From Octopus vulgaris (Eukaryota): DNA of 64,000 bases. The notes under the pieces were generated by a model. It was given only the letters and a program-made list of their open reading frames with translations, searched no databases and was not told the origin of the DNA. Within the stretch, counting starts at the first letter, position 1; each line of letters starts with the position of its first letter. The stretch is taken from the NCBI GenBank assembly GCA_951406725.2, contig OX597816.1, forward strand, positions 75,144,001 to 75,208,000, read 5' to 3'. Of this stretch, positions 9,646-63,646 are shown one piece after another. The position numbers and the translations under genes were made by a program.

Positions 9646-9649
9646 CAAC

Positions 9650-10610: not shown

Positions 10611-10652
<42 letters not shown>

Positions 10653-10658
<6 letters not shown>

Positions 10659-10957
10659 AGATCACGTGACCGACCAGACCATCAGATGTTGTTACACATC
10701 GCTGGTCACAATGCGTTCGCATTGTTTTAGCCTTCGAATGACGCCACCCCGCTGGCTAAGCGAGCAGGCCAACAGAAGAAATAGTGGGAGAAAGAGTGGT
10801 GAAAGAGTACAGTAGGGATCACCACCCCCTGCCTGAGCCTCGTGGAGCTTTTTAGGTGTTTTCGCTCAATAAACACTCACAACGCCCGGTCTGGGAATCG
10901 AAACCGCGATCCTGCGACCACGAGTCCGCTGCCCTAACCACTAGGCCATTGCGCCTC

Positions 10958-10960
<3 letters not shown>
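10653..10960 (-). mobile_element. Young tRNA-derived SINE
   Basis: minus-strand head with A box TGGCCTAGTGG and B box GGTTTCGATTCC; CpG-rich; 3' tail shared with the copy at ~49725-49985; sits between (TA)n and (CA)n tracts. Confidence 0.8.
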
Positions 10961-11001
<41 letters not shown>

Positions 11002-11009
11002 CACACACA

Positions 11010-11620: not shown

Positions 11621-12723
11621 GACACATTCATACACATATACACAAACATGTACACCTTGATTCTTCCCCCAGAATGAAGTGTTTATTACAGAGATGCTCA
11701 ATAAATAAGTGAAATAAATTAAATGAATTAGACCTATGAAAACATCTATGTGTAAAGTGGACTGGAAACTGAAAAGTTTTGAATATACAATACAAAGTAG
11801 ATACAGGCACATTACCTTTAATCCAAAACATATCTTCTTACAATTCTGTATGCCAAGTTGTCCACTGGTGTTACAAAAGGCAAAATTGTGACTGCAAGCT
11901 GATATGTATTAGCAGCAACATGGGGTCAGCACAATAAACAGGATGAAATAAATTGTTTACTCAGAATATTTTCAAAGGTTATATAAAAACCTGCAAAGAG
12001 TTTAAATGGGCCCAAGAATAAACTAAACCAAATTTATTTCTATTAGAATATTATGTGCCTGCATATTTTATAGCAGAACTGATCTGTTCATTAGTTTCGT
12101 TAAATTCTTTCTGCTGTTAGTTCAACTAAGACGCCTTCATTTACTTTCGTTACATGATTTATTTGTTGTTTCTCTCTGAGTGCAAATACATCCTGATCAG
12201 TTGCCTACGGAAATACTTTTTTCAAATCTTTTACAGCCAATATGTGTACAATATACCAATAATTGTCCTGTTGAAGCTTTCTTTAATCTCAAATGTACAT
12301 TGAGGTTAGTCTTCACCATTGACCACAAAAAACAAAATTTTTAAAAATCATTTTTGAAACATTTTTATTATCTTTTAGATGTCTTGCATTTGACATCAAT
12401 CATGAATTCAAAGAATGTCTAGTGATACCTCAGATCTTTAAAGAGTGACTAAGATTGAAAGAATTATTACTGGTGCATAGCTGCTTGGGATTAAATTCCA
12501 TAGTTTTAAATTGAGCAAGAAATACATCTCTGGTTAGTTCAGTTTAGCAAAGTAGATACTAGTACGTCAAAGAAATTAACTTACTAGTATTCTTATTCAG
12601 TGGGAAGAAAACTCAAAACTATGAAACTGTAACTTGTAAAACCACCCGCTTATAGATACAAACTAGCGTACAACTGTCATGCCTGTAATTTACATTCGTT
12701 GCTGTGGTTTTCATAATTATAAA

Positions 12724-39069: not shown

Positions 39070-39372
39070 ATCATCATCATCGTTTAACGTCCGTTTTCCG
39101 TGCTAGCACGGGCTGTACAGTTTGACCGGGGTCTGGGAAGCCAGGAGGCTGCACCAGGCTCCAGTCTGATCTGGCAGTGTTTCTACAGGTGGATGACCTT
39201 CCTAACGCCAACCACTCTGTGAGTGTAGTGGGTGCTTTTTTCGTGCCGCCAGCACAGGTGCCAGGGGGGCTCGCAGTGGCAACAATCGGTTGGTGCTTTT
39301 TACGTGCCACCGGCACAGAAGCCAGTCAAGGCAGCGCTGCAATCGGCCATGTTCGGATGGTGCTTTTTACGT
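39070..39372 (-). mobile_element. Young RTE-tail repeat copy
   Basis: (CAT)n-cgtttaacgtccg... reverse of the 29.7-30.2 kb tail. Confidence 0.85.
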
Positions 39373-39461
39373 GCTGAAAGGAAGCAACAGAAAGTAACAA
39401 CCACACTCTTACCCATGCGTAGAGTGGGTCACCTTCAGCTAGTATATATATATATTTATAT

Positions 39462-39526
<65 letters not shown>

Positions 39527-39612
39527 CACACACACATATATATATTTATACATACCCACACACACACACATATATATATGTGGCACTGGCATATATATAT
39601 ATATATATATAT

Positions 39613-40027
39613 GCCAGTGTCACTTAAAAGGCACCATTCGAGCGTGATCGTTACCAGCGTCGCCTTAAAGAGCACCATCCGAGCATGATCATTGCCAGAG
39701 TGGCTATCTGGCCTCCGTGCCGGTGGCACGTAAAAAACACCATTCGGCCGTGATCGTTATCAGCATCGCCTTACTGGCACCAGTGCCAGTGGAATGTGTA
39801 AAAGATTCGAGCAAGGTCATTGCCAGTACTGCCTGACTGGCCCCGTGCCAGTGGCACGTAAAAGCACCCACTACACTCTTTGACTGGTTGGCGTTAGGAA
39901 GGGCATCCAGCTGTAGAAACTCTGCCAGATGAAGATTGAAGCCTGGTGCAGCCATCTGGTTCGCCAGCCCTCAGTCATTCGTCCAACCCACGCTAGCATG
40001 GAAAGTGGACGTTAAACGATGATGATG
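39613..40027 (+). mobile_element. Young RTE-tail repeat copy
   Basis: modular aaaagcaccattcg units, then gcgttaggaagggcatccagctg...(GAT)n. Confidence 0.85.
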
Positions 40028-40754: not shown

Positions 40755-40878
40755 ATGATGTTGACAGACGATAAAGACTTAACAAAATTAATAGCCACAC
40801 GTAAGTCGGTACGAGTGAAGTTTGTCAATGATGAAGACATCGTCCAACATATTGTACACCTGAAAGAAAGAAAGAGAG
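40755..40878 (+). CDS. ORC2: ORC2 exon 1
   Basis: MMLTDDKDLTKLIATRKSVRVKFVNDEDIVQHIVHLKERKR; VKFVNDEDIVQHI matches the metazoan ORC2 N-terminal V.FV.DddvlnHI motif; GAG|GTGAGA. Confidence 0.88.
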
Positions 40879-41840
40879 GTGAGAATAACTTAATTATGCA
40901 ATTGTGTTATATTGCTAAAATCTGTCACCAAGTTGTTTATGTCAAAATTCAATCTACAACAAAGACACTCCGTTACTTTTAATATGATTTCAGTACTTTT
41001 ATTATTTTTCTGTGAAAAGACTCATTATTAACAGACATTGTCTATTGGTTTTCCTGGGAAAATTACGGATTGATAGGGTTGTATGGTTATAATTATTAGT
41101 TTATGTCTTTGTTTAATGCCAAATCCAGCACCAATTGAGCTATGACGCAAAGATTGTCGATCTAAGATTAGGTGTATCCCCTCTCCCATACATCTCATCT
41201 ACTATTCCAAGTATAGTGTGAATCCGCCGAGCTGGGGACGAATTAATCTAGTGAGATTGGTGGAGTTGATATTATGTACAGTTTGAAAAAACACAAGCAG
41301 AGAGTATACTGAGAAGGATGCTTAGTAGAGACTTTGTGGCTAAAAATATATTAAAGATGACGAGAAGAGGAAAGTTTGGGGCATTTGTGTGGTCTTGGGA
41401 AGTGAAGAGGAAACTGATGATGATGATAGAAAAAAAATGCGGAAACAGTATGCATTGGTTAGTGAACCATCAGCAATCAGACAAATATTGCTTTTGGATG
41501 TTATCTGGTATATATGATTGTGTAATAGACACAGTCTCCAGATATAAGCAAGTTTCTTGCGTTTTTTTTTTTTTTTATATCCTATGACTGTTAGTATTGT
41601 TTTGATGGTAGCTTGGTCACATTTAACCGGCCAAAACCAATAAAAGTGTATATTACAAAGTGGTCAGCAACTAATGAATGCTGAAGTATTTTCTCCCTCT
41701 CAAAAATGAAATCTTGACGTCAAGTTTTCAACATGTTATGTATTTGAGGCCATGATGAGAAGTTGTGAGGTGCATATAAGTCTGTATTCATTTGTATTTT
41801 GCTAGTCTTGCTGATTCCCAGTTTTGATGATCTATTGCAG

Positions 41841-41966
41841 GTGGCCTTCCACATATGGAGCGTACAGTCTCCAGCGGAGCCAAAAGACAAGCTGTTATGA
41901 TTAATGACCAAGAAGTTGTACTTGGAAGTAGTGATGAGGAAGATGAAGTTTATAAATCCTCAAGAG
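41841..41966 (+). CDS. ORC2: ORC2 exon 2
   Basis: ttgcag acceptor; GLPHMERTVSSGAKRQAVMINDQEVVLGSSDEEDEVYKSSR; G|GTATGA; phase 1-1. Confidence 0.85.
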
Positions 41967-42875
41967 GTATGATATTAATTATAGATATTTTCTCATATGT
42001 ATTGGAAAGGTAGAGGTAGTCAGTTGGTATGATTGCTTAACTGTTGATCTGTAAGTGATTGAATCAAACCTTCTTACAAGTGTTGCCTTGTGAGCTTGAA
42101 CAAGATACTTAACTAAATTCTGTTCAGCTAAGCTAGAATTTTTGGTGACATTCACTCTTTACAATTGAGTTTGATTAGAAAAGATATTCAGCTGTACTTA
42201 CCAGTGTACAAACCACAAAACTATACTTATTACTTGTTCTTACACTTTTTGAAAATATATAAATTCACATTGCCTATCAACCCATTACAATATGAAAATT
42301 GGCAGACCATTGTCCATTGGTGCATTTTAAACTATAATGATGTGCCTGTTTACAACCCACTACATTCTTTTCAAGGCCTGAAATTTTGGGGGAAGGGGCC
42401 AGTCAATCAGATCGACCTACTACGCAACAGGTACTTAATTTGTCGACCCTGAAAGAATGAAAGGCAAAGTTAACCTCGGCAGAACATAAAGACAGATGAA
42501 ATAACGTTTCTGCCAGCTTGCCACTTTACGACCCACTACATTGGCATTATTAATACCCTGTGTTAACCAGATTACTACATACAATGCTAATGATCAATCT
42601 ACACAATACAAGGTGTACCAACAATTCTACAGACCACAGTGCCACATAATTGCTATTGAACAAAAATAGATATTTGATCATTGAGACTATAATTCAAAGT
42701 AAAGATTATTTCCAATTAATAGGAAAACTGCAAATCTTTTATTTTTGTGAACTGTATTGCAGATATTGAACTTGTTTTTAAATGAAAATTTACATTTATT
42801 TCTAGTTCTCATTAATTTTTATTTTTTGTTTTTATTTTATATATATATTTTTTTTTTTATTATTACCTGAAAAAG

Positions 42876-42962
42876 CTTTGATGGTGAATGATGGAGATGC
42901 TGGTGGTAAAGATTTGTTTACTTTTCGAACACCTAAGAAATCAAATTCAATGACTCAAAAAG
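42876..42962 (+). CDS. ORC2: ORC2 exon 3
   Basis: (A)LMVNDGDAGGKDLFTFRTPKKSNSMTQK contains an F.F.TPKK motif; atypical AAAAAG acceptor; G|GTAAAT. Confidence 0.8.
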
Positions 42963-43606
42963 GTAAATTGTTCAACTTGTCAAGTTTTCAATTTAATTTC
43001 TTCCTTCTGACTGGTTTTTATCATCATCTCCAGACCTTCAGTTTCTGTTGTAGCTGTGTTCTCTGCCACCTTACTTTCATTTATTCTCACTAGGCTATGA
43101 AATATACTGCCTCATTCAGTTGTCTTAGTCAGTATAGAAACACTGACCTATGGTAGAAGCTGTAGCTAAGCAACTTATTGATCTAGCATCCTAAAGACAT
43201 TAGATGTCCAACCACTAGTATTTGTTTCTAAAAAAATTGAGGTTTACTGAAAGTAACATCTGCACATGTCTTAAAATGGCTTAACAAAGGACATTTGATG
43301 ATGAAATATATTATGTATATATAATAATTAATATATTATGATTATGCAATATGCTACGTATAAACATTTGATTATGAAATCTATTGTAAAAAGGGATCTC
43401 AAATACCAGATGTTAATGCATTGTCACAGTTGATACTATTAATAATGTTGGATTGGCTGAATGTGGTCATGATAATGATTTTGTTTTCATCCATCTTGTA
43501 GAGAATGATGTTATAAAAGTGAAAAGATAAAGTTGGAGTTTGTCAGTGTCAATATTTTATCTGTAAAATTCATCAACTTATTCCAAGGATGTCTCATCTT
43601 TTTCAG

Positions 43607-43678
43607 CATTTGAATCAAAAACACCAACCACTCCAAAATCTAAGAATTCTGTGCAAGAATGTAACAGACAACATACAG
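43607..43678 (+). CDS. ORC2: ORC2 exon 4 (72 nt, repeat unit A)
   Basis: tttttcag acceptor; FESKTPTTPKSKNSVQECNRQHT; CAG|GTAATT; phase 1-1. Confidence 0.8.
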
Positions 43679-46600
43679 GTAATTTCTATTGGTTTTTAGC
43701 CAACACCTTGTTCTGTGTTTCAGCTGATAAATAATGTTTATATAGTTATTCAATAATTTTCATATTGGAACTTTCCCAAGTTCTCTGAAAAAAGTTAAAT
43801 GCTAAAGATTCTTGAAAGCTCCTATATACGTATCACCAATCTATAATCAAAAGCATTCCAACCATGATTATCTCCCCACTCAGATATAGAGTATCTATTT
43901 TATCCAATGTATCTATTTTTTTTAAAGGTAGTAGAATGTGATTTGAGGGAGATTTGACTACTATTTCTTGAATGTTGAACATCTTGAAATGATGTGGAAA
44001 CTGTTGAACATTGATAGAAATTAAAATTGCAATATTTGGAATTATTAGTAGTGTAGACACCGTCATCCAGATACATTGAAAGATGGAAGAACTTGTTTGT
44101 AGTTACAGTTTGGAAAATTTTTTAGTATACTTCTGGATTGCTCTTCCTTTTTATATGTGCATTTCAGATAAAATATTTTGACTGGAAAATTTCCTGGCCA
44201 TTTTCTGATTCCAGAGTTCTATACAATTAGAAATTCAAATTCCCAGTGAGAACTTAATCTTTTGTTTTTGATAAATGTTCCTGATTAATCTATTGCACCT
44301 TTACCAAATTGTTTTATATAGCTGACTAGGTAACAGAATATTTGATGAAATATTTCCTTTTATCTACCCCAAATTTGGTTGCAAATAGGAAATTTAATAT
44401 TCAGTCACGGAGCAAAGATCACTTAGTCTCTTGTTGGAAAAAGGAAAAACCTCCCTCCTCCTCCTCTATATTTTCATATCTTTGGTGAAATATAATTTCT
44501 TTATTGGCTATCATGGTTGACAGGTCATAAATTAGTACTAGCTCATAGACTATTATGTTCGGTAGTACTGTAATGTTATTCTGTTATAAGAAATCACTCA
44601 GGAATAATTACTTGTGAATGATCTATTCAAGTACTGCAATATTATTAACTATTGTGGCACATAATGTCGTTTGATGTGGATCACTTATGGTTTAGTTAGA
44701 AAACAATTCAGAAGATTATTATCTTTTCAGCGAAAATGATAATAATCTCTGTACCTTGTATCTTGGCTTACTAACTGTCTTTTGTCTCTAGTCTTTAGTT
44801 GAGGCAGAACATAACTGCATATTAACTGCTGGGAACCTGTGACATTATAGAAGAATTTGTACTGGATAATTCCTAGTGGGTAGTGGAAGAAATCCAAGGT
44901 TGTGATTCTTCCAGCTCATTATTTACAGAAAAGGCCTATCATCATCATTTTTGGAATAGCTTTCCCATGCATGTCTGGGTTGGACAGAACCTTTCCGATG
45001 CAGCATCTTACCACTTATTACTTTCCTTTTTCATCTCTTTTGTGAGATTCAACATCCTGGAATCAACTGCTCATTTCTTCTTTGGTTTTCTTCCACTTGG
45101 TTTTCCTGGCACATTTTTACCCAATTGTGTTTTTACATCCACATGCATTACATATCTGTATCAATACAATTTTTTCTTAAGCACACTACACCTGACTCCT
45201 CTTTCCTCCAGTTTTCTCTCAGCTCATCTGTACCATATTGCTCATGCTCACTGACATTACACATCTAGCAGAGCAGACTTGCTTCATTTCTACCAGCCGA
45301 GATAATAGCTTCCTGAACTTTTTTCCGTCTTGTTCTTGTTCTGGCTACTATACTTACAGACTCCATTCTTCCACTACTGATTAGGTAACCTAACAAAAGT
45401 TATCAGCTGCTCTTACAGATCCTTTCCAGCATTAAGAAGAATTTATTTTATTAGTACTCTGATTGCTAATTACTCTTGTGCATCTTCCACATGTTAGTCT
45501 GTTTTCTGCGAGAACTTGCTTGTGCTCCCAGTATAACTCTTGTTCACCTCAAATCATATTAAGTAACTCTATGAAATTCATTTGATCCTGACCATTTCCA
45601 TGACAGCAGCAGATTCCTATCTTCTTTTCTACTTACTAAAACTTTGCACTGAGGCATCTTAGTTATTTTTGGGTTTATAAATACCATAATCACGCCTTAT
45701 CATCATTTGAGAGTTATATTTATTACACAGCCCTGACACTTCTCTTCCCATTACAGATTTCCATAATTAGTTGTGGCCTAGTGATTAGTCCTGGCTAATG
45801 GCAGAATTTGATTCCTTTGGCAGAATCCGAACTAAAAATGCAAAGAATCAGAACAGATACTGCAAAGCATCTTGTCTAGTGTTTTAAAAGTACTGCCAAT
45901 CCACCTCCTTGGACTGGTACTCTTGATCCTGAGTGAAAGAAAAACAAAGTTAACCCCAATGATAATTGAAACTGGAATGCATAAAGCTAGAATGAGTATG
46001 GCATGGCAGTTTATCTGCTCTGTTGTTCTACTAATTTACCTTCTGTGATTTTGTAGAGTTAAAAACTCAATTAGACAATGAAGCCATGTTTTATATAATA
46101 TCTCAAGTGTTGTCGTACACTCCTGAATGTATGTTTTAACTGGCCACGTGAGGAAATGTCTATTGTATGCATGATAGTAAAAGTTTGTTTTTTTTTTAAT
46201 ATAAGAAGTGTAAATGTGTTCTGGAAAAATTCAACTTTAAAGTAGACAAAGAAATATATAGTTGGATTGTCTACTGAATGTGCATCAAACAAAATATGCC
46301 AATATCTGTTTGCATATATCATTGTTTTTTAATATCCATCTTCCATGCTGGCTTGAGTTTGATGGTTCAATAGGATCTAATGGGTTTAAGAATTGCATCG
46401 TACTTCAGTATCTGTTTTGGTATGGTTTTTATGGATAGATGCCTTTCCTAATGTCAGCTACTTTACATAGTGTACTGGAAGCTTTTTTTGTAGCACCAGC
46501 ATTAGTGAGGTTGTCATGCAGCTTGCAAGACTAAGGTCCGTTTCAGCAGAGTGGGACTTCAATAGAGAGGGAGTGGCTTTATGGTAGATGAAAGATTAAA

Positions 46601-47028
46601 GTGGGAAAGAATGGGTTAGAACATGTTTCTTGCAGTAGAGGAGCTATATGGCTACTCACATTATAGAAGAGTGGGTAGTAGTAACCTGAGTAGCGCTAGA
46701 AAGAAAGATAAAATAATGATGCAGTGTCCAGGTAGATATGAATATATATGTTAGTGTGTGTAGTATGTCTGTCTCTCTAGTAGATGAGATCTGATGACAG
46801 ATAAGTTTGCTTGTAAAAGTTGAGATGTTTTAATTGGTACTGGTCTTAGGAATATAAAGCTAATATAACTAAACTCAAATGTTACAATAAGCATGAATAT
46901 AATTAAATTTATGGATTGTTGAATATAAACAGATTCCTATTTCTCTAGAAAGTGTAATTCTTCATCAAAAATTGTTTGGACAGTTTTATTGATGATGCAT
47001 GATGTATTTGTCAACTTTATTTCTTCAG

Positions 47029-47100
47029 GCCTTCAATCAAGATCTCCAAATACTCCAAAATCTAGGAAGCCATTATCTGAATCCAATAGACAAGAAACAG
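47029..47100 (+). CDS. ORC2: ORC2 exon 5 (72 nt, repeat unit B)
   Basis: ttcttcag acceptor; LQSRSPNTPKSRKPLSESNRQET; CAG|GTAAGA; phase 1-1. Confidence 0.8.
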
Positions 47101-48626
47101 GTAAGACAAAAAAAGGATTTTGTCCCTGATGTGTTTTAATAGTTAGCATAAATATTGATTTATAACAAACATACAGGCATGGCTGTGTAGTTTAGTAGCT
47201 TACTTTACCACCATATGGTTTCAGGTTCAATCCCACTGCATGGTACCTTGGCCAAGTTTCTTCTACTGTAATCCCTGGCCAACCAATGTCTTGTAAGTGA
47301 ATTTGTTAGAAACTGTGTGGAACATCATCATCTAATGTTTGCTTTCCATGCTGTCATGGGTTAGACAGTTTGATTGAAACTAGTAAGCTCAAGAACTACA
47401 CCAGGTTCCAACCTAATTTGGAATGGTTTCTATGGCTGGATGCCCTTCCTAATGCCAACCACTCCAAGAGTGTTATGGTTGCTTTCTACGTGCCACTGGT
47501 ACAGGTACTATTAACATGACACCAGCAATGGCCGCAAGTACAATTTCACTTGGTTTGATGAGTCTTCTCAACCACAATATATTGCCAAAGGTCTCAGTCA
47601 CTTACCATCACCTCTGTGAGGCCCAACATTGAAACATCATGCTACTGGCATAATGTGTGTGTGTATGTGTGTGTGATCACTTGACAACAAATATTGGTTT
47701 GTTAACGTCTCTATAACTTAGCAGTTTGACAAAAGAAACCAATAGAATAAGTACTGGGGGTAATCTGACTAAAACCCTTCAAGGTAGTACTCTAGCATTG
47801 TCACTGAAACATGTAAAAGAAGATACAAGGCAGCAAATTTTGGGCAGAAAGTCTGATCAGTTGACTTCCTCTGGATGGAAGAAAGACAATGTTTTTTTAA
47901 CTTAGAACATAAATAGGTCTAACTAAATTCCATGAGATATTTGTCTATTCTCTATTGATTCTATCAATGCTTTTATCTAACATCTGCCATCCCATTCAAG
48001 TATGATGGTAAATGTAAGGCAGTCATCATCTTCAGCAACACATTTCCAGTTGTTTTAGACGTCCAGTACAGTTACACAGTTTAAATATTCTTTGAAAATA
48101 GTAAGTCAAGAAATTGTTGTTTAGCTCCAAATCAACCGTCACTGAGTAGACTTATCACAGCCATTCTAGATGTTGCCATCCCATCTAGGACAATATTATT
48201 TGATGTCTTTTCCTTTTCTAACACGTTAGTCTGTGAGTTGAGGGAAATTTGGCTGCTATTTTTAGTAAGTCATGCAACAATTTAGAAGCTGTTGTTGGCT
48301 AAAAGTCAAAGAAGTTTTCTTCACCCACCCATCTCTAACTCTGCATTAACCACTATATCCAGTCCTTCCCTCCCAGAGCTTGTTCTCTGTAGGATGCCCT
48401 CTATAGCCTCTTTTCTTTTTGAGTTATTCATGAAGAACAACTACACCAGTCTCAGAATTCTTGGAAGGGCTTTGAAAGGCAAAGATAGACCCTTCTTCTA
48501 GACCAAAGCATTTAAAAAAAACAAGAAGAAAGTCAATGAGCTGAACCTTAATAGTAAAGCCAAGTAAACCATCATCCTTCTACTTTTCGAAGGTGTTACT
48601 AAAATATTTCCTTTTCTACATTTCAG

Positions 48627-48713
48627 ATAGTCTTGCTATGACCTTACGGAAGAAATCACACAAAAGACCAGAAACCACTACACCATATCGGCTCCGTAAA
48701 AGAAATGATATTG
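48627..48713 (+). CDS. ORC2: ORC2 exon 6
   Basis: tttcag acceptor; SLAMTLRKKSHKRPETTTPYRLRKRNDI with a TPYRLRKR CDK/basic motif; G|GTAAGT. Confidence 0.87.
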
Positions 48714-49448
48714 GTAAGTATTTCTTTTCTCACTTTTTTTTTTCTAGGCCATTTGTAACTTCTAGCCTGCTATCTCTAGAGTTTACTGTAATGTCCTAGT
48801 CTGGATTAGATTGTTCTTTCCCAACACATCATTTATGAGGGACTTACTCTGTATTTCTTCTTCCTATTAAATTGGCCTGAACACTTTAACATTTAAACAG
48901 GTCATATGTGGCCCAAATATTCTACCTGCTTTATGTTCAAACTGGCCAGATTCAGCCTCTCACACCTACCCTACAATGTCATTCTAAAAGCAAACAATGG
49001 CATCATTGAAATCTCAAATCTATGAGATAATGCATGATTAATTCAAAGCAGTATGAATAAATAAGCATTAAATTTGACAGAGTACCCTGAATGCTAAAAG
49101 GTCAAGAGATCTATATATATTTTTAATTTTTTTGTCTTGTAACTATTTCTTCCTGTTTACATGGTTGAGGCAGCTTTATGAATTTTTTTCCAATTTACAC
49201 CTTGTTGAAATGATTACTGTTGTAACTGGACACCACAAACCATTCACTCACAATGTAGGAGTAGAACTTGTCAGCCAGGTAGGTTGTGGACAGCTGAATT
49301 GTGGGTCATGCTCAGGGATACACACTAAATTTGGATTTAGTAAGGTTTGAACTTCTAACTTTGTGGGTAATAATCTAGTACTTTAACTTCATGACTTGTC
49401 TTATTAATCAAATTTTCACTGAAGCCAAAAATATTTGATTTTTTACAG

Positions 49449-49657
49449 CTTACAATGATGAATCCTCCAGTGACAGTTTATGTTCTTCCAGTGATGAAAG
49501 TGACTCAAGCTTTGAACCCCAACAAAAGGTCCTTTCAAACACTGCTGATTTAACTATCAAGGAGTCTAAGGATTCCTCTAAAATTAAGCCAACTTCTAAA
49601 GCTAACACAAAAATTTCCACTCCAAGTGCTTCCAAAAAAATGTCTGAGGAAGATATG
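49449..49657 (+). CDS. ORC2: ORC2 exon 7 (acidic/Ser-rich)
   Basis: ttttttacag acceptor; open for 69 codons, YNDESSSDSLCSSSDESDS...KKMSEEDM; ATG|GTATGT. Confidence 0.85.
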
Positions 49658-50179
49658 GTATGTATGTTAATGCATGAAGTATATGTTATCTTTGTATATT
49701 ACATTATATATTATCGTATATGTGAAAGCATCTGACCTAGAGGTTGCACTCAAAATCACAAGATCGTGGGTTCGATTCCTGGACCAGGTGATGCATTGTG
49801 TTCTTGAGAAAAACACTTCACTTCACATTGCTCTGGTCTGCTCAGATACAAATGGATAAGCCCACAACAGAATAGCCTTCTAATTAGGAGGGATGTTGGT
49901 CTGCTTGAAGCTAAAACGATGCGCAGAGCATTGTGGTCAGCGATGTATAACAACATCTGATAGCCTGATTGATACTGTGATACCATGATTATCCTACATG
50001 CCGTCATATGAAAGAACAGGCTCTTAAGATAAGTTCTAAGAATTCGTACGTGCTATACTTGCTGCATAAGATTATAACAAACTTCACACTTATCACAAGG
50101 CCATAATTAATAAATTCTGCTAATTTGTTTTTGAGGCAAACTAGCTGATGTTTCTACATTTTAACAAAGTACAAAAAGT

Positions 50180-50350
50180 CGCAGGTGTGGCTGTGTGTTA
50201 AGAAGTTTGCTTCCCAACCACATGACTCAGGGTTCAGTCCCACTATCTGGTACCTTGAGCAAGTGTCTCGTTTTATAGTCACAGGCCAATCAAAACCTTG
50301 TGAGTGGATTTGGTAGATGAAAACTGAAAGGAGACTGTTGTGTGTGTGTC
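50180..50350 (+). mobile_element. tRNA-head CORE-like SINE; further copies at ~27630-27790, 47175-47330, 50845-51130, 54385-54530, and a 3' part at 35105-35340 on -
   Basis: gtggctgtgtg.taagaag.ttgcttcccaaccacatg...ggttcagtcccact...gagcaagtgtct recurs, followed by (TG)n. Confidence 0.75.
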
Positions 50351-51215
50351 TGTATGTATATGTTGGTATGTACCTATGTGTGTATTAAGTGAATCTCTTG
50401 CATTTTATTTCATGTGCCACCAATTTTGTTTTTCTTATAGCATAGCCAATATATATCGTGTTGAACAGAACTAAACCACTTGCTTGGTATCCTGTTTAGT
50501 TGCCTAAAAATAAAGTTAGTAAAAAAAGACAATACTGATTTTCACTTAAAAATCATTGAAAAAACAGTTGCTGCCTTCATTAGTTTCTGAGATATCACAT
50601 TAGAAACTCAGTGAACCAATCAGCCAAACAAATGAAAAAAATAAAAGTTTTTCTTTCTTTTCTTTTTTTTTTTTGCTTAAGTATGCAAAATGACTGAATA
50701 TTTAAAGAGTGGCATAATAAATGTTAGCTTTGTAAAGTAAGAAATTGTGTTAATAACATTTGAAATACATTTTTCTTTAGGTTTCTCTGAGCCAGTATAA
50801 CAATAAAAAAGATAAACATGGTAAATAACAATCACTTTAACAGCAGGTGCAGGCGTAACTGTGGTTAAGAAACTTGTGGTCTTGGGTTCAGTCCCACTAC
50901 ATGGCATCTTGAGCAAGTGCCTTCTACTATAGTCCCAGGCCAACTGAGCTTTGTGCTTGTGAGTAGATTTGGTTGGCGGAAACTGAGAGAAGACTGTTGT
51001 GTGTGTGTGTGTGTAACCAACCAACCAACCAACCAACTAATAGTTTGGCAAAAATTACTGATACAATAACTACCAGGATTTAAAAATAAGTACTGGGGTC
51101 GATGTTTGACTACACCCTTCAAAGTAGTGCCAAAAACTAGTGGAAGTTAAAAAAAAAAACTGTAAACGTGTCTTTTATGTTCATGTGACATTGCTTAAAA
51201 CTTGTCTTCTAACAG

Positions 51216-51421
51216 CCATCTATTGTAGAACAGTATTTTGAAGTACATTCTACAAAAGGACTTACATCAGACCGAACACTGTCTCGACTGGATATGCCAC
51301 GAATTGATTTAGACGATTTACAGAAACTTCTAAAAAATGTCTCGGGAAACCATTGCAAGGAGTACAAACAGCTTTTTAACAAATATTCTGAATATTTTGA
51401 CAAATGGTTATTTTTACTCAG
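51216..51421 (+). CDS. ORC2: ORC2 exon 8 (start of conserved ORC2 domain)
   Basis: PSIVEQYFEVHSTKGLTSDRTLSRL...YFDKWLFLL; VEqYF..H...lTSDRTL is diagnostic of ORC2; AG|GTAATC. Confidence 0.96.
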
Positions 51422-52880
51422 GTAATCTATTTCATGAATTCACTGTCACCTGTAGTTCATATTTGTTATTTTATATGCTGGTGTGTAGCTAAATGACTAA
51501 AGAGTACTAAAAGCTGTTGAGATTGGTGATTTATTATTAATTATTATGGAAGTGATAGTGTGTCTATATACTTGCATAGATAGGTAAATATTTGATTTTT
51601 TTTTATAATAATTTAATTGTCTAGCATTCAGATAACTTTGTCAAATGCAATGCTTTTTTTTTTATTCACATTGTTTTAAATTAACCATGCATTATCTCAT
51701 AGCTTTGAGGTTTTGACGATGTGATTGTTTCTTTTTAGAATGATATTGAAGGGTAAGTGTGAGATGTCAGATCTAGCCAGTTTAAACATAAATCAGTCCA
51801 CTCTGCAAAGTGGTGGGTGTTCAGAAGGGCATCCAGCCATAAAAAACCTGCCAAAACAGACATAGTAGTCTGGGGTAGTCTTTTACCTGGCCAGCTCCTG
51901 TCAACCATCCTACCCATACATGCATGGAAAATGGATGTTAAATGATGATGATATATATATAAATAATATATATATATATGTTGTAGTTTTCCTGTTTGCA
52001 TCACCAAATTTGTATAATATATATTTATATGTATGTCCAACCCATGCTAGCATGGAAAACGGACGCTAAACGACGATGATGATGATGAATGCAGGTATTA
52101 CTGTGTTGTTAAGAAGTTTGCTTTGCAAGCATGTGGTTCTATATTCAGTCCCATTTCACAGTACTTTGGACGAGTGTCTTCCATTTTTGCCTCAGTTTGA
52201 CTGATGAATTGTGTGTGAAATCATCATCATCATCATCATTTAACATCCATTGTCAATGTTGGGATGGGTTAGATGGTTTGACCAAGGCTGGTAAGCTGAG
52301 GGGCTACACCAGTTTCCAGTTTGATTTGGCATGGTTTCTCAAAGGCTGTCATTACTTTCGAGACAGTACTTCTTGATACACACCAAACATTTCGGCTGTT
52401 TTTGTTATGCTAGTGCCTGGCATACAAGCACCAACAGTTTGACCTCTTTGAAAGTCTGATAGATCTGTCATTTTAATTACCTTTTTCTGATGATATCTGA
52501 AAAGAAACAGTAATTTTAGCAACACATATTAAGCAACACTAATAATAAATCAAAAGACAAAAATAAACCAGCTTTTGATGGTTTTATATATATTACAAAA
52601 TTATGATACTATGATGCTAGGTGTTTCCATTATTTTGTCCAACACCTGTGTATATAATTAGAGAAAGTGTGTGTGTGTGTGTGTGTGTGGGAGATACTGC
52701 TTATGCAGCAGCAGATTTTGTTATACATGTATGGGTATATTACACTGTATTGCAAGTGTCTTACTGTATTTCATAATAATGTGACTGCTGCACTGTATAG
52801 CACTGCTTTATTATACAGTGCATTAACTGCTTGTATACTAATTTCTATAAGTCATTAACATACAGATTTTTTTTTCTCAG

Positions 52881-53013
52881 TTATGGATTCAATATTATGG
52901 TATATGGATTTGGCTCCAAGAAATCATTATTAGAAAAATTCTTCTCTGAAAAACTCAATGGATATGATCATGTTATTGTCAATGGCTTCTTCCCAAGTCT
53001 GTCAATAAAACAC
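52881..53013 (+). CDS. ORC2: ORC2 exon 9
   Basis: YGFNIMVYGFGSKKSLLEKF...HVIVNGFFPSLSIKH (GFN..YG.GSK and VNGFFP motifs); CAC|GTATGT. Confidence 0.97.
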
Positions 53014-53812
53014 GTATGTTGACCTTTCATTTTATTTCACTGATTTTGAAGATGTTACGGCCTGAAGAGCCATTTCAAAGAAAAATGAGTTGGATTAAAA
53101 ATTATTATAGAAAAGGTGACTTTGTGAGAATTTTTTTTTTTATAAAAGACTATAAGTTAGTCACAGGCTGAAAAATTGTGCAAGTGGTATTAGTGTTTGC
53201 TGACTCTCCCTTATTTGTGAAAGCAATGTGGTTGATGTTGAGTTTAAACATTTGCATATTAAACTCTGCTGTAAAAATAAGGGTTGAGTGGAATTCCAGA
53301 GTATTGAAATGCTGGGAAAAAAATCATCAGGATTTTACATCAGTTTTCCATGCTAGGGTTGGTTGGGTGATTATTGCACTCTTTGATGGCTTTGAAGACC
53401 ACATCCGACATGTAAGTTACATTTTTTTTTCATGGTTTCTGTAGCCAGATGCCCTTTCTAACCACACAAGCACACTTGTGCCTATGAATGTTCCCTTTCC
53501 CTAATGAATGCCTGTTGACAAAGGGCAAATTAATTGAAATAAAGTAGATATATATATATATAAATATCTCAAGAGCTAGTAATCTCTTCTCATAAAAAAG
53601 AAATTAATACATCTTTGAGAGAGCAGCTCAATGTGCAGCTCAGTACAAAATAGTAATAATGAATAAATTGTTTTAAAAAATAATAGCTAAAGCTAATAGT
53701 CCATAAAATAATCATCTATTTAAATTGAGTTAATTGGAGATGAAATTTCTCTAACATGTGAATCGTGTTTTATAACTACAGTTTAAAGAACTTATTGTCT
53801 TTCACATTTTAG

Positions 53813-53906
53813 ATTTTAGATTCAATAACAGAAGAGATTCTTAATGAAGAAGGAACATTTAAAACCCTGTTGGACCAGTGTGAATTTATTAAGAAGTCTC
53901 TAGAAG
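53813..53906 (+). CDS. ORC2: ORC2 exon 10
   Basis: ILDSITEEILNEEGTFKTLLDQCEFIKKSLE; G|GTCAGT. Confidence 0.93.
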
Positions 53907-56229
53907 GTCAGTGGCTTTTTATTTGTTTCCCTCATTAAATTGTTATTTTTATTTTTTGTGATTTATAAATTAGTGACAGTACTTATAACCTTTGCTGGTT
54001 CTTATAGACTGGTGTGACTTACTTTCAGTTTTTAACATCTGTAGGCTGGTGTTTGCTATGTGAACAAGGAATGAATTGCAGTTCTGAAGATAACTGTCAA
54101 GCCATCTTGCTCATGCTGGCATGGGTAGGATGACTTGACAGGGTCCTATGGAGCTAAGGACTGCATCATGCTCCACTGTCTACTTTGGCATGGTTTCAAT
54201 GGCTGGATGCCCTCCTAACATCAAATGTACTGAGTCAAAGTATTGGTATTCATTGGTCAAAGTATTTAGAATGAGATCAATAAGGGTATTGAGAGGAAGA
54301 GGGACAACTGTGTCAGGTAGACTTGTTGTCTGAGGAACATTGAAGCTACAATGTAGTATGCTTGTTATTTCAATTTACCATAAGTGCAAACATGGCTGTG
54401 AGGTTATGAAGTTTGCTTTGTAGTCATGTGGTTCCAGGTTCAGTTTCAGTGCATGGCTCCATGGGCAAGTGTCTTCTACTATGACACTGGGCTGACAAAT
54501 GCCTTCTTACTGGAATTGGTAGGTGAAGAAGACCATCAGATCATCATCATCATTTAGCATCTGTTTTCCATGCTGTTTTCCAAGTACCTTACTTGGGAAA
54601 CAAGTAAGAGTTAGTGACTGGGAGAGCATCCAGCTGTAGAAAATCTTCTTTAACAGTTTTCATTTAAAGCATGCCAACATGGAACCACAGATATAATCGG
54701 TTAATTGATGCAAACTATGTAGGTCTTAAAACGCTTGTTGAAGTGGCTCTTCAGAGTAACCTAATTTGTGGACCCATTCAACCATCTCCTAGTATTAACA
54801 AACATAAATAAAAGTAAAATTTCTTTAATCTTCTCTATTTGAAGAAGGTTGGAAATATGTGTAACAATAATATTTTTATTGTTTGTTATCTCCAAATTTT
54901 TGTATGACGTACTAATACTCTACAATAGCTTTATTTTGTTACTTAAAAAAAAGGTAATCTCGAGTCACTGTAGGTTAACAGTCACCAGTGCTGACTTGAC
55001 AGGCATTTCATTTTTGTTGATTCAGTGTAACTAGCTGTAAATCAGCCAATATAGTTGTTATAGCTTACCAGTGTAAATGATGGTATCACTGTAATTGACA
55101 AGTGTTCTCTTAAATTTGTAGGGTTGAGTTAAACCCTGGGATAGACTGACATTCTATTTTGCTTCTCAGCTAATTAACACTGTAAAGACTAAAAGTAAAC
55201 TTCATCAGCCCACAATTCCTTCCAGTTAGTGCAATAAGAAAATAAAAATATATTTTAAATATTGATTTATAGCTTTGGGTACAAGATCACACATTGGTAA
55301 TGAAAGAACTATAGTTAAGTAAATTAATGCAGTACATTACTGGTATCTGTAGGCAAAATTAAATATAACAGGGTTAGAAAAATACATAAAGGCATGTTTA
55401 AAAAAATGGAAAAAATTCATCCTTCTATCACTTCTACCATTCTGTCAACCTTCTATCAAAGATACAAGGGTGACAAATTTTTGTGAAGGGGTACATCCAA
55501 TTAAATTAAACCAGTACTTGACTAGTTCTTATTTTATCAACTTGGAAAGCTGAAAGCCAAAATCATTCAGGTGGAATTTGCAATAAATGCTGCAGGAGAT
55601 TTTGTCCACCTCTCTATTAATTTACTCCTGAATCTATTATGAGATGGATATTAGCAGGAACATGGAAATTTATATTATATCATGTTTGAACCCATTGGAG
55701 TTTTCTTATCACAAAGCAATATTACATTGTTGACGACTGCTTTTCAATTTTGCTTGTTCTATATTCAAAAGAATGTGAAGAAGATATGGTAAGTAGGAAG
55801 TGTCAGTTGTTTCAACAAACAGAGATACATGCAGAATGACATAACTCTTTACCTGTCCAAAGCATTTTCATTTGTTTCATATGTTTTGAGTAATCTAAAG
55901 TTCCTCTAGTTGTTGAAAAAAAATTGGGCGTGCCGGTGGCACGTAAAAAGCACCATCCGACCGTGGCCGTTGCCAGCTTCATCTGGTCTCCATGCCGGTG
56001 GCATGTAAAAAGCACCATCCGATTGTGGCCGTTTGCCAGCCTCATCTGGCACCTAAAAAGCACCCACTACACTCACGGAGTGTTTGGTGTTAGGAAAGGC
56101 ATCCAGCTGTAGAAACACTGCCAGATTAGACTGGGCCTGGTGCAGCCACCTGGCTTCCCAGACCCCAGTTGAACTGTCCAACCCATGCTAGCATGGAAAG
56201 CAGACGTTAAACGATGATGATATTATATA

Positions 56230-56460
56230 CAGGGTTGGCCAAAAGTCACTTGACTGTAAATCAAAATTCCATAAATTCTATCTAATTCTGTATTGACTCA
56301 AATGGAAAAATGTATTGCTCAAGAAGGACTTCAGTTTGAACAATTTTCATGATGTTTCATATTTAGATGCTTTTATTAAATTCATTCAATTGTTAAACAT
56401 AAATAAATCTTGGAATTAAATGGTATTGATTTACTGCCCAGTGACTTTTGGCCAACCCCG
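56230..56460. mobile_element. Tc1/mariner-type MITE, 231 bp
   Basis: 35-bp TIRs (31/35 matching) cagggttggccaaaagtcact..., TA on both sides. Confidence 0.88.
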
Positions 56461-56703
56461 TATAATGCATAGACACCAAGGAAACAATTTGAGTGTCACA
56501 GGACAGGCAAACAGTTAAGTACAGTAGCTCAGAAAGAATTGAACTTACTTTCTGGGTCTTAATGCCACTATCCACCACTACTGCTGCACAGCAGGGCTAT
56601 AGGAAGGTTCATGACATTAATATTTGGATGATGAATTGTGTTGTTAACTTATCTACTAATTAACAAAGTATATTTTGTTTTTTTTCATTTATTTTTAATA
56701 CAG

Positions 56704-56850
56704 ATGATGACAGAGATTTCTACCTGTTAATCCATAATATTGATGGCATCATGTTACGTTCAGCTAAAGTCCAGAATATATTTAGTTTCCTATGTAAAAT
56801 TAAGCGTTTCCATATGGTCGCTTCTGTTGATCACATAAATGCACCTTTAA
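56704..56850 (+). CDS. ORC2: ORC2 exon 11
   Basis: DRDFYLLIHNIDGIMLRSAKVQ...MVASVDHINAPL (LIHNiD and ASiDHiNAPL motifs); A|GTAAGT. Confidence 0.97.
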
Positions 56851-58034
56851 GTAAGTCATTTAACTCCTCTATCTTTCTTTCTCTCGTTTTGCATCCATTT
56901 TTTCTTGCATGTGTACATAGAAAGGTTTTTGTGATGAAATCATTAGTTTTGCAGCCGGATGGTGTCTTTTCCTTCTGTTAAACATTTAATTGTTTACTGC
57001 TTACTAAAATTTTTGGCAATCATAATTCTGTAGTATTGTTTCTTCTACGTTAATAAGAACACTGAGACATAGAATTTTTCTAATATTTTAAACTTTGTTA
57101 TGATTGTTATTAATGGCTAGCTGCAACTGAGCAAGTTGGTACTATGGTATAAATATTTAACTTCAGCTGTAATTGGTATTATGCTGAGCCACAGCTCACA
57201 AGTGCATTAATAGAATGCAGTGAGGAATTCAAATTCCATTATAGACCTTGAAATAACAGTAAACAAATTCAAATCTGTGTTTGACATAAAATCTCCCTGA
57301 TCCAACAATCCAATGTGACATTATTTCATTGAAAGACCAACATCACTGTATAATAATTGTGTCTGTTACTATAGATGACACTTTACAGAAAATTAGGGAA
57401 TAAATTCCATACATAAATCGAAGTGTTGACTTGAACCCAGGTTTTATGAGTGAATGAGTGAAAACAAAATGGTTCAGTTACTAATCGTAGGTTCCTAGTT
57501 GGAATTTAAACCACAAATTCCTAGATATATTGCCATGTATAAAATGTTTTGTTATGTACTCATTTCCAGCTTACATCAGTCTGGAAGAAGAGTGGGATCA
57601 TCTATATGGTTGCTTCATCTGTTGAATAGAGCTGCTAGGTTTTCCTCTACAAATCTCCTTATTGTCTTTAATATAGAACCAACAGGAAGGATTTGGTGAA
57701 TTTTTTCAACTGGAACAATGCTGTTACCAAATCCTCCTCAATAATTTCCATACTGTCTTTAGCATGTAGCCAGCATGGAAGCTTTTATGTAAATACTCAG
57801 TATGCACAATATAGCAACCAAAACTGCTTCCACAAGCCCTGTATAGTGTAAAATAGGGATCATGCATTCTACTTCTAAATATTATTATTACCCTGTCCTA
57901 TAATTGATCAAATACTTCATACTTGTGGGGCTGATCAAAGAACTATTCGAAGACAACAAAACCCCAACCTTATATTGTTGTATTTAATGCAATTTTTTCA
58001 TTGTTTTTATTGTAATGTAATTTTGCTATTTCAG

Positions 58035-58271
58035 TCTGGGACCAGATGCGCTACATCAAATTCAATTGGTTGTGGTGTGATGTAACTACTTATGAGCCTT
58101 ACATGGAGGAAACAGCCTATGAAAATTCCCTGATGGTGCAACAATCTGGACGTTTAGCACTGAGCTCCCTGTCACATGTCATGCATAGTTTAACATCAAA
58201 TGCTAAAGGGATATTCATGCTTCTTGCTCGCTATCAAATGGAAAATCAAGCCAGTGTTCAGAACTATCAAG
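58035..58271 (+). CDS. ORC2: ORC2 exon 12; remaining C-terminal exon(s) lie beyond the window
   Basis: WDQMRYIKFNWLWCDVTTYEPYMEETAYENSLMVQQSGRLALSSLSHVMHSLTSNAKGIF; G|GTAACT; no REAFLV/EFRDH-type exon found up to 64000. Confidence 0.97.
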
Positions 58272-59716: not shown

Positions 59717-61049
59717 AGAAGGTGACCTGAAAAGTTCATAGGTTGACTATGAAGGAGTGATGCTAGAGCTCTGAAATCATCATCATCATCATCATCGTTT
59801 AGCGTCCGCTTTCCATGCTAGCATGGGTTGGACGGTATAATCTTGCATGCATTAATTTTGATTCTTCTTATTAATAACTGTAGTGGTTCTTTCCCAGTAA
59901 ACTGACTTCTGACTGTTCAGAGACTTCAAAAGTAACTAGTAGCAACTTCTTTTGAAAATGGACAAAATTTGGCATCATGTTATCAAGCACCTGCAGAAAA
60001 ATAGTTTAGCCCCCAAGGACATTCATGCTGACGCAGTTGCTACATTAGATGATGTTCCAGCTTTATCAACAGTGCAAAATGAGGCAGCTGAATTTAGAAG
60101 GAGAAGAGAAAGTCTTGAATATGACTCAAGATCCTGCAACTTCCACCACTGAGGAAAACATTGATCATATTCACTACATAGTGATGGATGACAGGCTATT
60201 CACTATACATCAAATAACCTGTGCTATTAGCATATCCCTTGAGAGTTGAAAATATTCTGCACAAGGAACTTGGTGTGATGATGGTTTTTGCTTGATGGAT
60301 ACTACATCTTCTGACATCAGATCAAATGTGCACCAGGCTGATCATATCACGGGAAAATCTGACATTGTTTGAAGCATATTCTGCTGGTTTCTGCGAATGT
60401 TTCCCTCAGCCAAGATGAGTGTTGGGTTCATCACTTCGAGCCAAAGACAAAGAAACAATCTATGCAGTGGAAACACCCCTCTTCACCTGTTCCAAAGAAA
60501 GCCAAGGTCGTTTCATCTGTCAGGAAGGTGACAGCCTCAGTTTTTTGGGATGCAAAATGCATTGTGTTTATTAACTATATTTAAAAGGGCCACATCATCA
60601 ATGAAAGGTGCTATGCCAACTTGTTGAGGTAGTTACAAAAGGCTATCAAGACCAAACACCCAGGAAAACTCATGAAACGGGTCTTGTTTCATCAGGACAG
60701 TGCTCTAGCACACAAGTCCTAAGTTTCAATGACTGCAGTGTGTAACTGGCTTTGAACTGGTTGATTAACCTCCCTATTCTCCTGATTTGGTCCCATCTGA
60801 CTATCATTTGCTCCTCAACGTGAAAAAACACTTGGCTGGGAATTAGTGTTGCAGTGATGCTGTCACATCAGCTGTTGGTGACTTTTTTGACTAACAAGAC
60901 GAAAGATTTTTCAGCAATGGGATCCAAGCGCTACACCAATGGAAGAAGCATGTGGACCACAAAGAGAAGTATGTTGAAAAATAAACCTCATTTGGTCACA
61001 CTCCATGAGAGCATCTTGATCATCCTATGAATTTTTCAGCTTGCCCTCA
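59717..61049 (+). mobile_element. Full-length decayed mariner with a 60-bp RTE-tail insertion at ~59778-59838
   Basis: TIRs gaaggtgacctgaaaagttcatagg / cctatgaatttttcagcttgccctc with TA flanks; DECWVHHFEP.TKKQSMQWKHPSSP, ASVFWD. Confidence 0.88.
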
Positions 61050-62382: not shown

Positions 62383-63646
62383 TCAGGTCATCCCATAAGT
62401 TCTGGCCGATTTTACCTTTTTTTAAAATTGAATGAAATTTAATAGTATTTTAGAATGTTTAATGGAATTAAAAATTATTTTTATGCATTTGTATACATTT
62501 AAACTAATTAAATATTATTTTACAGAATAATAGATTAACAATTTCTTTGATTAAAACCCTTTCTAACATGGAAGTATCCAAAGAGTATTTGAGGCACATA
62601 ATGCTTTATGAGTACAAAAAAAGGAAATTCTGCAGCCAAAGCAACTTGAAACATACACTCAGTTTATGGGAAAGAATGCTTGAATGAAAGAACTTGCAAA
62701 ATTCAGTAGTGGAGATTTCAGCCTTGAAGATGAAGATCGAACAGGACGTCCAGTTGATGATAAGCTCCTTGAGGCATTACTTGAAGAAAATCCTGGATTA
62801 TCAGTTGAAGAATTGGCAATAAAGCTTAGTTCAAACCATACAACTGTTCATCATCATCTTCAACAACTTTGAAAGGTTCCTAAACTTGGAAAATGGGTGC
62901 CTCATGAATTGTCCAAAAGCAACTGCAAATCCCAAGTTGACATCTGCTCTTCTCTCCATTCTTGTGAACTCATTTCACCCTTTTTGGATAGACTTGTGAC
63001 TGGTGACTGAAAATGGATCTTCTATGGAAATGTTAAACATCATAAACAGTGGCTTGGTAAAAGGAAAAAAGTTCAACCACAACCAAGAAGGGAACTTCAT
63101 GGGAAAAAGGTTCTTTTCTCTATCTGGTGGGATTGCAAAGGAGTAATTCACTTTGAATTGTTACCACCTAATTCAACAATCAATGCTCAAGTCTACTGTC
63201 AGCAATTAGAGTGTTTGAACCAAGCTTTAAAGAAAAGAAGACCTGCTTTAGTGAATCGAAAAGGATGGTGTTTCATCAGGACAATGCGCGACCCCACACT
63301 GCAAAGATCCCATCACAGAAGATCGAAGAGATTAGTCGGGAAAAAATTCCTCATCCACCTTATTCTCCCAACCTTGCTCCTTCAAACTACCATTTGTTTT
63401 GTAGTTTACAGAATCATTTGGGGTACATAACTTTCGCAAGTCAGGAGGAGGTTGAAATTGACATTTCAGAGTTCGCTTTGAAACCAAAAGAGTTTTACAT
63501 TGATGGGATTAAAAAGCTTGTAAATAGATGGAAGGAAGTCATAGATAATCAGGGAAAGTACATTGATTAAATTTCAATTAACTATAACATTTGATCACTT
63601 GTTTTACTTTATTCAAAATTTGGACAGAACTTATGGGATGACTTGA
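62383..63646 (+). mobile_element. Full-length (1264 bp) DD34D mariner, pseudogenised
   Basis: TIRs tcaggtcatcccataagttctg / cagaacttatgggatgacttga with TA flanks; ATG at 62568; WVPHEL, HQDNARPH, HPPYSPNLAPSNYHLF; frameshifts. Confidence 0.93.

Follow-up and report, generated by a model that had tools for sequence, protein, structure and literature searches.

A probable ancient tandem exon duplication in octopod ORC2 and the proline-directed phospho-acceptor sites that it carries

The window analyzed here, a 64-kb stretch of the Octopus vulgaris genome (64,000 nucleotides (nt) of contig OX597816.1), contains coding exons 1–12 of the gene for ORC2 on its + strand (40755..58271), and we find that two of these exons, 4 and 5, are very probably true ancient duplicates of one another. 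The best explanation of the whole, to which we give reasonable but not high credence, is that a 72-nt exon was tandemly duplicated, that both copies were retained and are included in the product, and that the added phospho-acceptor sites would raise the capacity for phosphorylation of the N-terminal region.

The identity of the gene, named as ORC2 in an earlier note made from the DNA letters, agrees with the results of tblastn, Pfam and exact translation. The spliced 12-exon model is an exact match to residues 1–531 of the O. vulgaris ORC2 product (P0121), and tblastn of O. vulgaris ORC2 (P0002) against the window gave 100% identity in every exon over the first 532 residues; thus the window holds the O. 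vulgaris ORC2 locus. The translated exons in the window match the Pfam family PF04084, RecA-like_ORC2 (E 1.9e-65, 221 bits), while the C-terminal winged-helix domain PF24882 is annotated in the product P0002, but its exons lie past the end of the window, as do the final two ORC2 coding exons (amino acids 533–598). Similarly, the human ORC2 chain 7cte_B matches the octopus protein with E 7.8e-124 (query 17–596 on chain 10–574), and the translation of the exon chain matched ORC2 of O. vulgaris, O. bimaculoides, Argonauta hians, Acanthosepion pharaonis and many other animals. ORC2 of O. sinensis is nearly identical to that of O. vulgaris, with Leu at residue 114 compared to Phe in O. vulgaris. 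The coordinates of the exons are collected in Table 1.

Exons 4 and 5 are consecutive coding exons of equal length and equal phase that align without gaps, with 49 of 72 nt and 11 of 23 amino acids identical (FESKTPTTPKSKNSVQECNRQHT vs LQSRSPNTPKSRKPLSESNRQET). These recomputed counts agree with the earlier note, which had reported both exons as 72 nt long and phase 1-1, and whose numbering as 4 and 5 is right for the coding exons of the 12-exon model. Both exons have AG acceptors and GT donors (tctttttcag/...CAG/gtaatt for exon 4 and atttcttcag/...CAG/gtaaga for exon 5), and only one reading frame is open in both. We assessed the significance of the similarity by shuffling exon 5, either by mononucleotide (200,000 shuffles) or by codon order (200,000 shuffles for nucleotide and 20,000 for amino acid identities), the latter of which holds amino acid composition and codon usage constant. 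Identities of 49 or more were obtained in 0 of 200,000 mononucleotide shuffles (mean 21.9, z 7.4) and in 0 of 200,000 codon-order shuffles (mean 24.8, maximum 44, z 6.2); similarly, 11 or more amino acid identities were obtained in 0 of 20,000 codon shuffles (maximum 8). Moreover, in a scan of all 72-mers on both strands of the 64-kb window, exons 4 and 5 retrieved one another as best non-self match, with 49 identities compared to 40 for the next best match to exon 4 and 36 for the next best match to exon 5, and no further degenerate copy of the exon with more than 40 of 72 identities was found. In a repeat search of 42900–49500, the exon 4/5 pair was the sole direct repeat (84 nt, 71%, spacing 3422). 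The identity is spread over both halves of the exons (27/36 and 22/36), and by codon position amounts to 16, 18 and 14 of 23 for the first, second and third positions, with the third position lowest. An explanation by composition alone, against which the earlier note had named shuffling beforehand as a possible refutation, is rejected by the mononucleotide and codon shuffles and by the full-window 72-mer scan; the similarity exceeds composition, and the shuffles together with the reciprocal best matches bear out the tandem exon duplication that the note had proposed.

The similarity is confined to the exons. Local alignment of the intron flanks of exons 4 and 5 (300 nt and 60 nt) gave z-scores of −0.3 to 0.6 relative to shuffles, compared to a z of 12.1 for the exons, so that in O. 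vulgaris the segment originally duplicated has left no direct trace. The missing flank similarity is as expected for an old event and does not disqualify a tandem exon duplication.

To compare species, we fetched the orthologous genomic loci from O. bimaculoides (CM046603.1, here L001), Argonauta hians (L002) and the cuttlefish Acanthosepion pharaonis (L003). In A. hians, the two units are found as distinct exons of 72 nt with canonical splice sites (L002 10122–10193 and 12572–12643), and the same is true of O. bimaculoides; the ORC2 protein of O. sinensis contains both units as well. In a maximum-likelihood tree, the Octopus and Argonauta exon-5 copies cluster (ultrafast bootstrap 87, Shimodaira–Hasegawa approximate likelihood ratio test 100, 90% of bootstrap trees), although this tree is built from 72 columns, has moderate support and does not resolve the exon-4 group. 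The exon-5 copies have LQ-S/T-RSP in common, and the exon-4 copies ALES-K/R-TPTTPK. Based on the separate exons in Octopus and Argonauta and on the clustering of the exon-5 copies, the duplication is very probably older than the Octopus–Argonauta split, and it possibly took place in the coleoid ancestor. A search with ORC2 residues 84–200 for more cephalopod sequences returned the same four octopod clusters only, and none from squid, Vampyroteuthis or Nautilus; the 'lgn' ORC2 matches that we inspected have a vertebrate-type or non-cephalopod N-terminal motif with no cephalopod features.

Outside the cephalopods, the scallop Pecten maximus has a single exon of ∼54 nt (ASEARTPKSILKTTLTQG), flanked by the counterparts of exons 3 and 6, and in Ruditapes the corresponding piece is joined to exon 3. 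From these two bivalves, one unit is likely to be the ancestral state in molluscs. In the cuttlefish, there is one exon of 144 nt (L003 12489–12632), equal to 2 × 72 nt, and the conserved flanking motifs are 89 amino acids apart in cuttlefish and octopods alike. Homology to exon 4 is clear in the first half of this cuttlefish exon (z 6–7).

A further and very recent duplication, of exon 4, is found in O. bimaculoides, in which there are three copies of this exon (L001 5328–5399, 5652–5723 and 6119–6190) ahead of exon 5 at 9022–9093. The repeated unit is a tandem segment of 324 bp (L001 5250–6364) that comprises ∼77 nt of upstream intron, exon 4 and ∼175 nt of downstream intron, and the three units are 98–99% identical, with 2–6 positions different. 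The novel junction between units, which joins AATCAAAAGCAT to GAAGTTGGAG, occurs twice in gap-free O. bimaculoides sequence. A gap of 95 N lies between units 2 and 3, with ∼47 nt of the same sequence on either side, and merging of these ends restores the 324-bp spacing; in this short-read-derived assembly, the exact copy number is uncertain. The array shows that the ORC2 locus duplicates as an exon with flanking intron, and by analogy the old exon 4/5 event likely took place by the same mechanism. The annotated O. bimaculoides products of 597, 621 and 645 amino acids differ solely in having 1, 2 or 3 exon-4 units.

Each of the two exons carries two sites in which serine or threonine is followed by proline (S/T-P), as the earlier note had stated: T118 and T121 in exon 4, and S142 and T145 in exon 5. 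These four sites fall within 48 residues and make up 4 of the 7 S/T-P sites in ORC2 residues 1–260. Exon 4 opens with a motif conserved in bilaterians, A-x-E-S-K/R-T-P; in an alignment of 30 ORC2 sequences, the residue with which exon 4 starts, A113, does not vary, and conservation of P119 amounts to at least 90%, with the consensus KA-x-ESRTP. The exon 4 segment aligns with residues 109-LASELAKTPQKS-120 of human ORC2, such that human T116-P117 falls on the pair T118-P119/T121-P122. The pairwise HMMER alignment places human T116 opposite octopus T121, while the near invariance of P119 in the 30-sequence alignment and the K-T-P context point to T118 as its counterpart; we therefore give the counterpart as the T118/T121 pair and not as one residue. 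Human T116 (ELAKTPQKSVSF) and T226 appear as CDK2 sites in a table, after Lee et al. (2012, J Biol Chem 287:11891), of a published paper (PMC5217639).

The region in which these sites lie is predicted to be unstructured. In the AlphaFold2 model based on the 30-sequence alignment, residues 116–261 have a predicted local distance difference test score (pLDDT) of <50 and no secondary structure, while the RecA-like and winged-helix parts of ORC2 are folded confidently; the earlier claim of a disordered N-terminus is thus upheld at the level of prediction. The description of the sites as cyclin-dependent kinase (CDK)-type stands in part, in that the sites are minimal S/T-P and the exon 4 motif aligns with that around human Thr116, but the full S/T-P-x-K/R consensus is seen in none of them.

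In budding yeast, phosphorylation of Orc2 by CDK is by itself sufficient to block the stable closing of the Mcm2-7 ring and helicase loading, and the phosphorylation sites of Orc2 lie in structurally unresolved regions (PMC10629557). Because the exon 4 motif is homologous to a mapped human CDK site and because of this yeast precedent, a phospho-regulatory reading is plausible; by this analogy we suggest, tentatively and with less confidence than for the duplication itself, that the added sites may have a functional phospho-regulatory consequence.

The likeness to human ORC2 with its Thr116 and Thr226 extends to the aligned motif, with the near-invariant P119 after T118 as in human K-T116-P, and to its position in the unstructured N-terminal part that precedes the RecA-like domain. 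The two differ in that human T116 has the full consensus (TPQK) while the octopus exons have TPTT/TPKS and SPNT/TPKS, in that there is a single copy of the motif in human, and in that the octopus sites are known from sequence alone. Budding-yeast Orc2 (studied with the orc2-6A mutant; PMC10629557) likewise has a cluster of S/T-P sites in an unresolved and presumably unstructured N-terminal part, and the inhibition of helicase loading by their phosphorylation provides a model for why the number of sites could matter. However, the N-terminal sequence of yeast Orc2 cannot be aligned with that of octopus (the yeast chain in PDB aligns from query residue 156 only), no exon duplication is involved, and the two clusters of sites are probably independent in origin.

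We propose a history that begins with one 72-nt phase 1-1 exon, which encodes the first part of a variable linker within the unstructured N-terminal region of ORC2 and bears the A-x-E-S-K/R-T-P motif; this exon would have been tandemly duplicated to give coding exons 4 and 5. The event was probably an unequal recombination or a replication slippage over a few hundred bases that took in the exon and adjacent intron, and both copies have since stayed in frame with their splice sites intact. Judging from the annotated products, the octopus protein has two S/T-P-x-T-P-K-S-K/R modules with four proline-directed acceptor sites, compared to one short exon with a single TP in the scallop. The added sites would be phosphorylated by CDK or by another proline-directed kinase, and the capacity for multisite phosphorylation, which in yeast and human ORC2 lowers licensing activity or chromatin binding outside G1, would thereby be raised.

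Several observations weigh against this history, in addition to the small number of columns behind the tree. The four sites of exons 4 and 5 are all of the minimal S/T-P type (TPTT, TPKS, SPNT and TPKS), and within the N-terminal 260 residues the full S/T-P-x-K/R consensus occurs only at T102 (TPKK, exon 3) and T179 (TPYR, exon 6). Both exons change rapidly in their C-terminal halves; in exon 4, four of the four nucleotide differences between O. vulgaris and O. bimaculoides change the amino acid, and Argonauta exon 5 has no TP at the aligned position, its second TP having moved (SPRNVKSKTP). This fast turnover fits weak constraint on the linker. Finally, the second half of the cuttlefish exon has only 19–24 of 72 nt identical to exon 5 without gaps, and its gapped z is at most 2.7, which is not significant.

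One alternative is that the duplication is real but neutral, so that exon 5 is an extra disordered spacer between FxFRTPKKS...MAQKA and TTPYRLRKR and its S/T-P sites are relics. The linker varies in length, from 61 to 94 amino acids in molluscs and from 63 to 74 in vertebrates, and in so variable a linker extra residues or sites may be neutral; the rapid amino acid turnover in both exons, the loss of the aligned second TP in Argonauta exon 5 and the minimal consensus of the sites all agree with such a spacer. Motifs like TPKS have also been multiplied by other routes in Lottia and Ruditapes, which could result from mutational bias in low-complexity sequence. On the other hand, the open frame, the splice sites, the length of 72 nt and two S/T-P sites in each exon have been kept since before the Octopus–Argonauta split while the flanks are random, and the identity between the exons is lowest at third codon positions (14/23 vs 16 and 18). 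The repeated multiplication of TP-K-S, including that in O. bimaculoides, could equally reflect selection for site number. Taken together, we consider a neutral spacer to be possible but unlikely. The TP-K-S modules appear, from the sequences compared, to have multiplied independently in several mollusc lineages, a pattern compatible with recurrent selection for more sites as well as with neutral drift of low-complexity sequence. In the ORC2 protein of Lottia gigantea (P0026), a run of KTPKS-like repeats (AKTPKSAAKEKEPKTPKSALKTPKSKSTTPGK) is found at residues ∼70–105, where octopus has exons 4 and 5.

The cuttlefish gene raises a different alternative, concerning the order of events. That one cuttlefish exon spans the same total linker length implies that an intron was lost or gained, and with a second half not significantly similar to exon 5, this 144-nt exon is compatible with three histories that differ in the order of the duplication and the intron change. 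The duplication may have preceded the coleoid split, the intron being lost later on the way to cuttlefish, or the linker may have expanded independently to equal length in cuttlefish and octopods. Alternatively, the coleoid ancestor had a single 144-nt exon with an internal 72-nt repeat, and octopods later gained an intron exactly between the units, in which case no exon would have been duplicated along with its splice sites. An exon of exactly 2 × 72 nt in A. pharaonis and the 89 amino acids between the flanking motifs in both groups are as expected in that case, and the junction of the repeat (...ACAG/GC...) resembles a proto-splice site. However, exons 4 and 5 are similar over their whole length, from first base to last, and have equal phase at either border, the O. 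bimaculoides array shows duplication of the exon together with flanking intron, the halves of the cuttlefish exon do not resemble each other significantly (nor is the second half significantly like exon 5), and Pecten already has a separate small exon here. In animals, moreover, precise intron loss is more common than intron gain, which counts against an intron gain in octopods. We therefore regard the gain of an intron between two pre-existing units as quite improbable.

Skipping of exon 4, exon 5 or both would keep the reading frame, and the earlier note had suggested that such skipping could tune the number of sites. The preservation of frame stands, but no product that skips either exon is annotated in O. 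vulgaris, O. sinensis or Argonauta: both exons are present in all annotated products of O. vulgaris (3), O. sinensis (1) and Argonauta (1), and all those of O. bimaculoides have at least one exon-4 unit together with exon 5. Copy-number isoforms are found in O. bimaculoides only, where they concern the extra, recent exon-4 copies. The symmetry of the exons, to which the earlier note had also drawn attention, is confirmed as phase 1-1 but is not special, as ORC2 exons 2–6 (126, 87, 72, 72 and 87 nt) all have this phase. Exons 3 and 6, which adjoin the duplicated unit upstream and downstream, each carry a conserved motif. The entire stretch that encodes the unstructured N-terminal part of ORC2 (41841–48713) consists of frame-neutral exons.

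Thus, judging from the annotated products, exons 4 and 5 are probably both included constitutively. If instead they were alternative exons, mutually exclusive or singly skipped, the number of modules in mature ORC2 would vary; the preservation of frame upon skipping of exon 4, exon 5 or both and the O. bimaculoides products of 597, 621 and 645 amino acids with 1, 2 and 3 exon-4 copies would be in keeping with this, and tandem exon duplication is tied to mutually exclusive splicing (PMC9013439). This alternative is very improbable, however, since an exon-4 unit and exon 5 are found together in every annotated product of the four octopod species, and not one of the two per product as in a mutually exclusive pair; since the splice sites of both exons are strong, pyrimidine tracts being long and the donors CAG/gtaa; and since the O. 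bimaculoides forms could result from ambiguous mapping of reads to near-identical exons or from a mis-assembled array with its 95-N gap. The tuning of site number by splicing therefore finds no support in O. vulgaris and is at the level of annotation only in O. bimaculoides. A more far-reaching view is that the octopod exon equivalent to the Thr116 region is a recurrently amplifying module, with one duplication before the Octopus–Argonauta split and two very recent ones in O. bimaculoides, that the 1-, 2- and 3-copy O. bimaculoides products reflect real alternative inclusion, and that evolution and splicing both tune the number of proline-directed sites (6, 8 or 10 in the linker segment); we consider this view unlikely.

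The weakest alternative, that exons 4 and 5 resemble each other without common descent through convergence or a shared low-complexity composition rich in S, T, P and K, could appeal to the abundance of S, T, P, K, N and Q in both peptides and to a common core that is a short TPKS-type motif recurrent in other molluscs, but it has next to no chance of being correct given that codon-order shuffles never attain 49 nt identities or more than 8 of the 11 amino acid identities, that identity extends across both exon halves, and that the exons are adjacent and equal in length and phase while the next 72-mer in 64 kb has at most 40 of 72 identities.

Tandem exon duplication is already well known in animal genes (reviewed in PMC9013439), including clinically annotated human cases (PMC8373072), and the octopus ORC2 pair is a lineage-specific case of it. 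As in the known cases, the exons are adjacent, of equal length and phase, and significantly similar, and a scallop outgroup has a single exon; the fresh tandem segmental copy in the sister species O. bimaculoides shows the mechanism. The known cases differ in that they are mostly mutually exclusive and provide alternative versions of a folded segment, while the octopus ORC2 copies are apparently both included and lengthen a disordered region. A literature search for tandem exon duplication and cephalopods found no paper, although ORC2 specifically was not searched for.

Table 1. Coordinates of ORC2 features in the window
Feature	Position	Strand	Remarks
ORC2 exon 1	40755-40878	+	
ORC2 exon 2	41841-41966	+	126 nt, phase 1-1
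ORC2 exon 3	42876-42962	+	87 nt, phase 1-1; F-x-F-R-T-P-K-K-S...M motif; T102 (TPKK)
Single-copy counterpart of the O. bimaculoides 324-bp segment	~43530-43856	+	From breakpoint comparison of L001 5250-6364 with the window
ORC2 exon 4	43607-43678	+	72 nt, phase 1-1; A113-T136 and first base of G137, (A)FESKTPTTPKSKNSVQECNRQHT
ORC2 intron 4	43679..47028	+	3350 nt, between the two exon copies
ORC2 exon 5	47029-47100	+	72 nt, phase 1-1; (G)LQSRSPNTPKSRKPLSESNRQET; very probably paralogous to exon 4
ORC2 exon 6	48627-48713	+	87 nt, phase 1-1; conserved RPETTTPYRLRKR motif; T179 (TPYR)
ORC2 exon 7	49449-49657	+	
ORC2 exon 8	51216-51421	+	
ORC2 exon 9	52881-53013	+	
ORC2 exon 10	53813-53906	+	
ORC2 exon 11	56704-56850	+	
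ORC2 exon 12	58035-58271	+	

The window as a whole is AT-rich (∼35% G+C), and the introns are long. Intron 10 of ORC2 contains a 62-nt tandem repeat (55931–56049, 1.9 copies, 91% match), to which open frames with 'HLKSTIRL/CRWHVK' at ∼39200–39900 and ∼55800–56100 are related; these probably belong to a dispersed repeat family. Remnants of mariner/Tc1-type transposases are found at 2382–2822(−), 4554–4775(−), 5237–5491(−), 60363–60581(+) and 63011–63567(+), with matches to Mos1 HTH_48 (E 1e-17) and Transposase_1 (E 3.6e-9) and weak matches to DDE_3 and HTH_Tnp_Tc3_2; the last two remnants are downstream of ORC2 exon 12, probably in the next intron. Upstream of ORC2, an open frame at 3189–3362 (+) that contains FSLTNCGHVYCEKC matches zf-RING_5 (PF14634, E 4.8e-11) and, we presume, is similar to exon 1 of a meiotic RING ligase of the RNF212/Zip3 type. 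The region from 8000 to 12000 is a block richer in G+C (0.41–0.46) with long overlapping open frames on both strands and no Pfam match; the peptide HLKDQGTPYDIK is encoded at ∼8360–8500 (−) and again at ∼9990–10110 (+), which suggests an inverted duplication.

Whether or not the extra sites are used, knowledge of ORC and of exon duplication is unchanged. If they are unused, the octopod gene would be another neutral expansion of a disordered linker. If they are used, it would be a clean natural example of a licensing factor that gained multisite phosphorylation by whole-exon duplication, and the ongoing amplification in O. bimaculoides may offer natural 1-, 2- and 3-copy variants in which the number of sites in a disordered region could be compared with the response to CDK.

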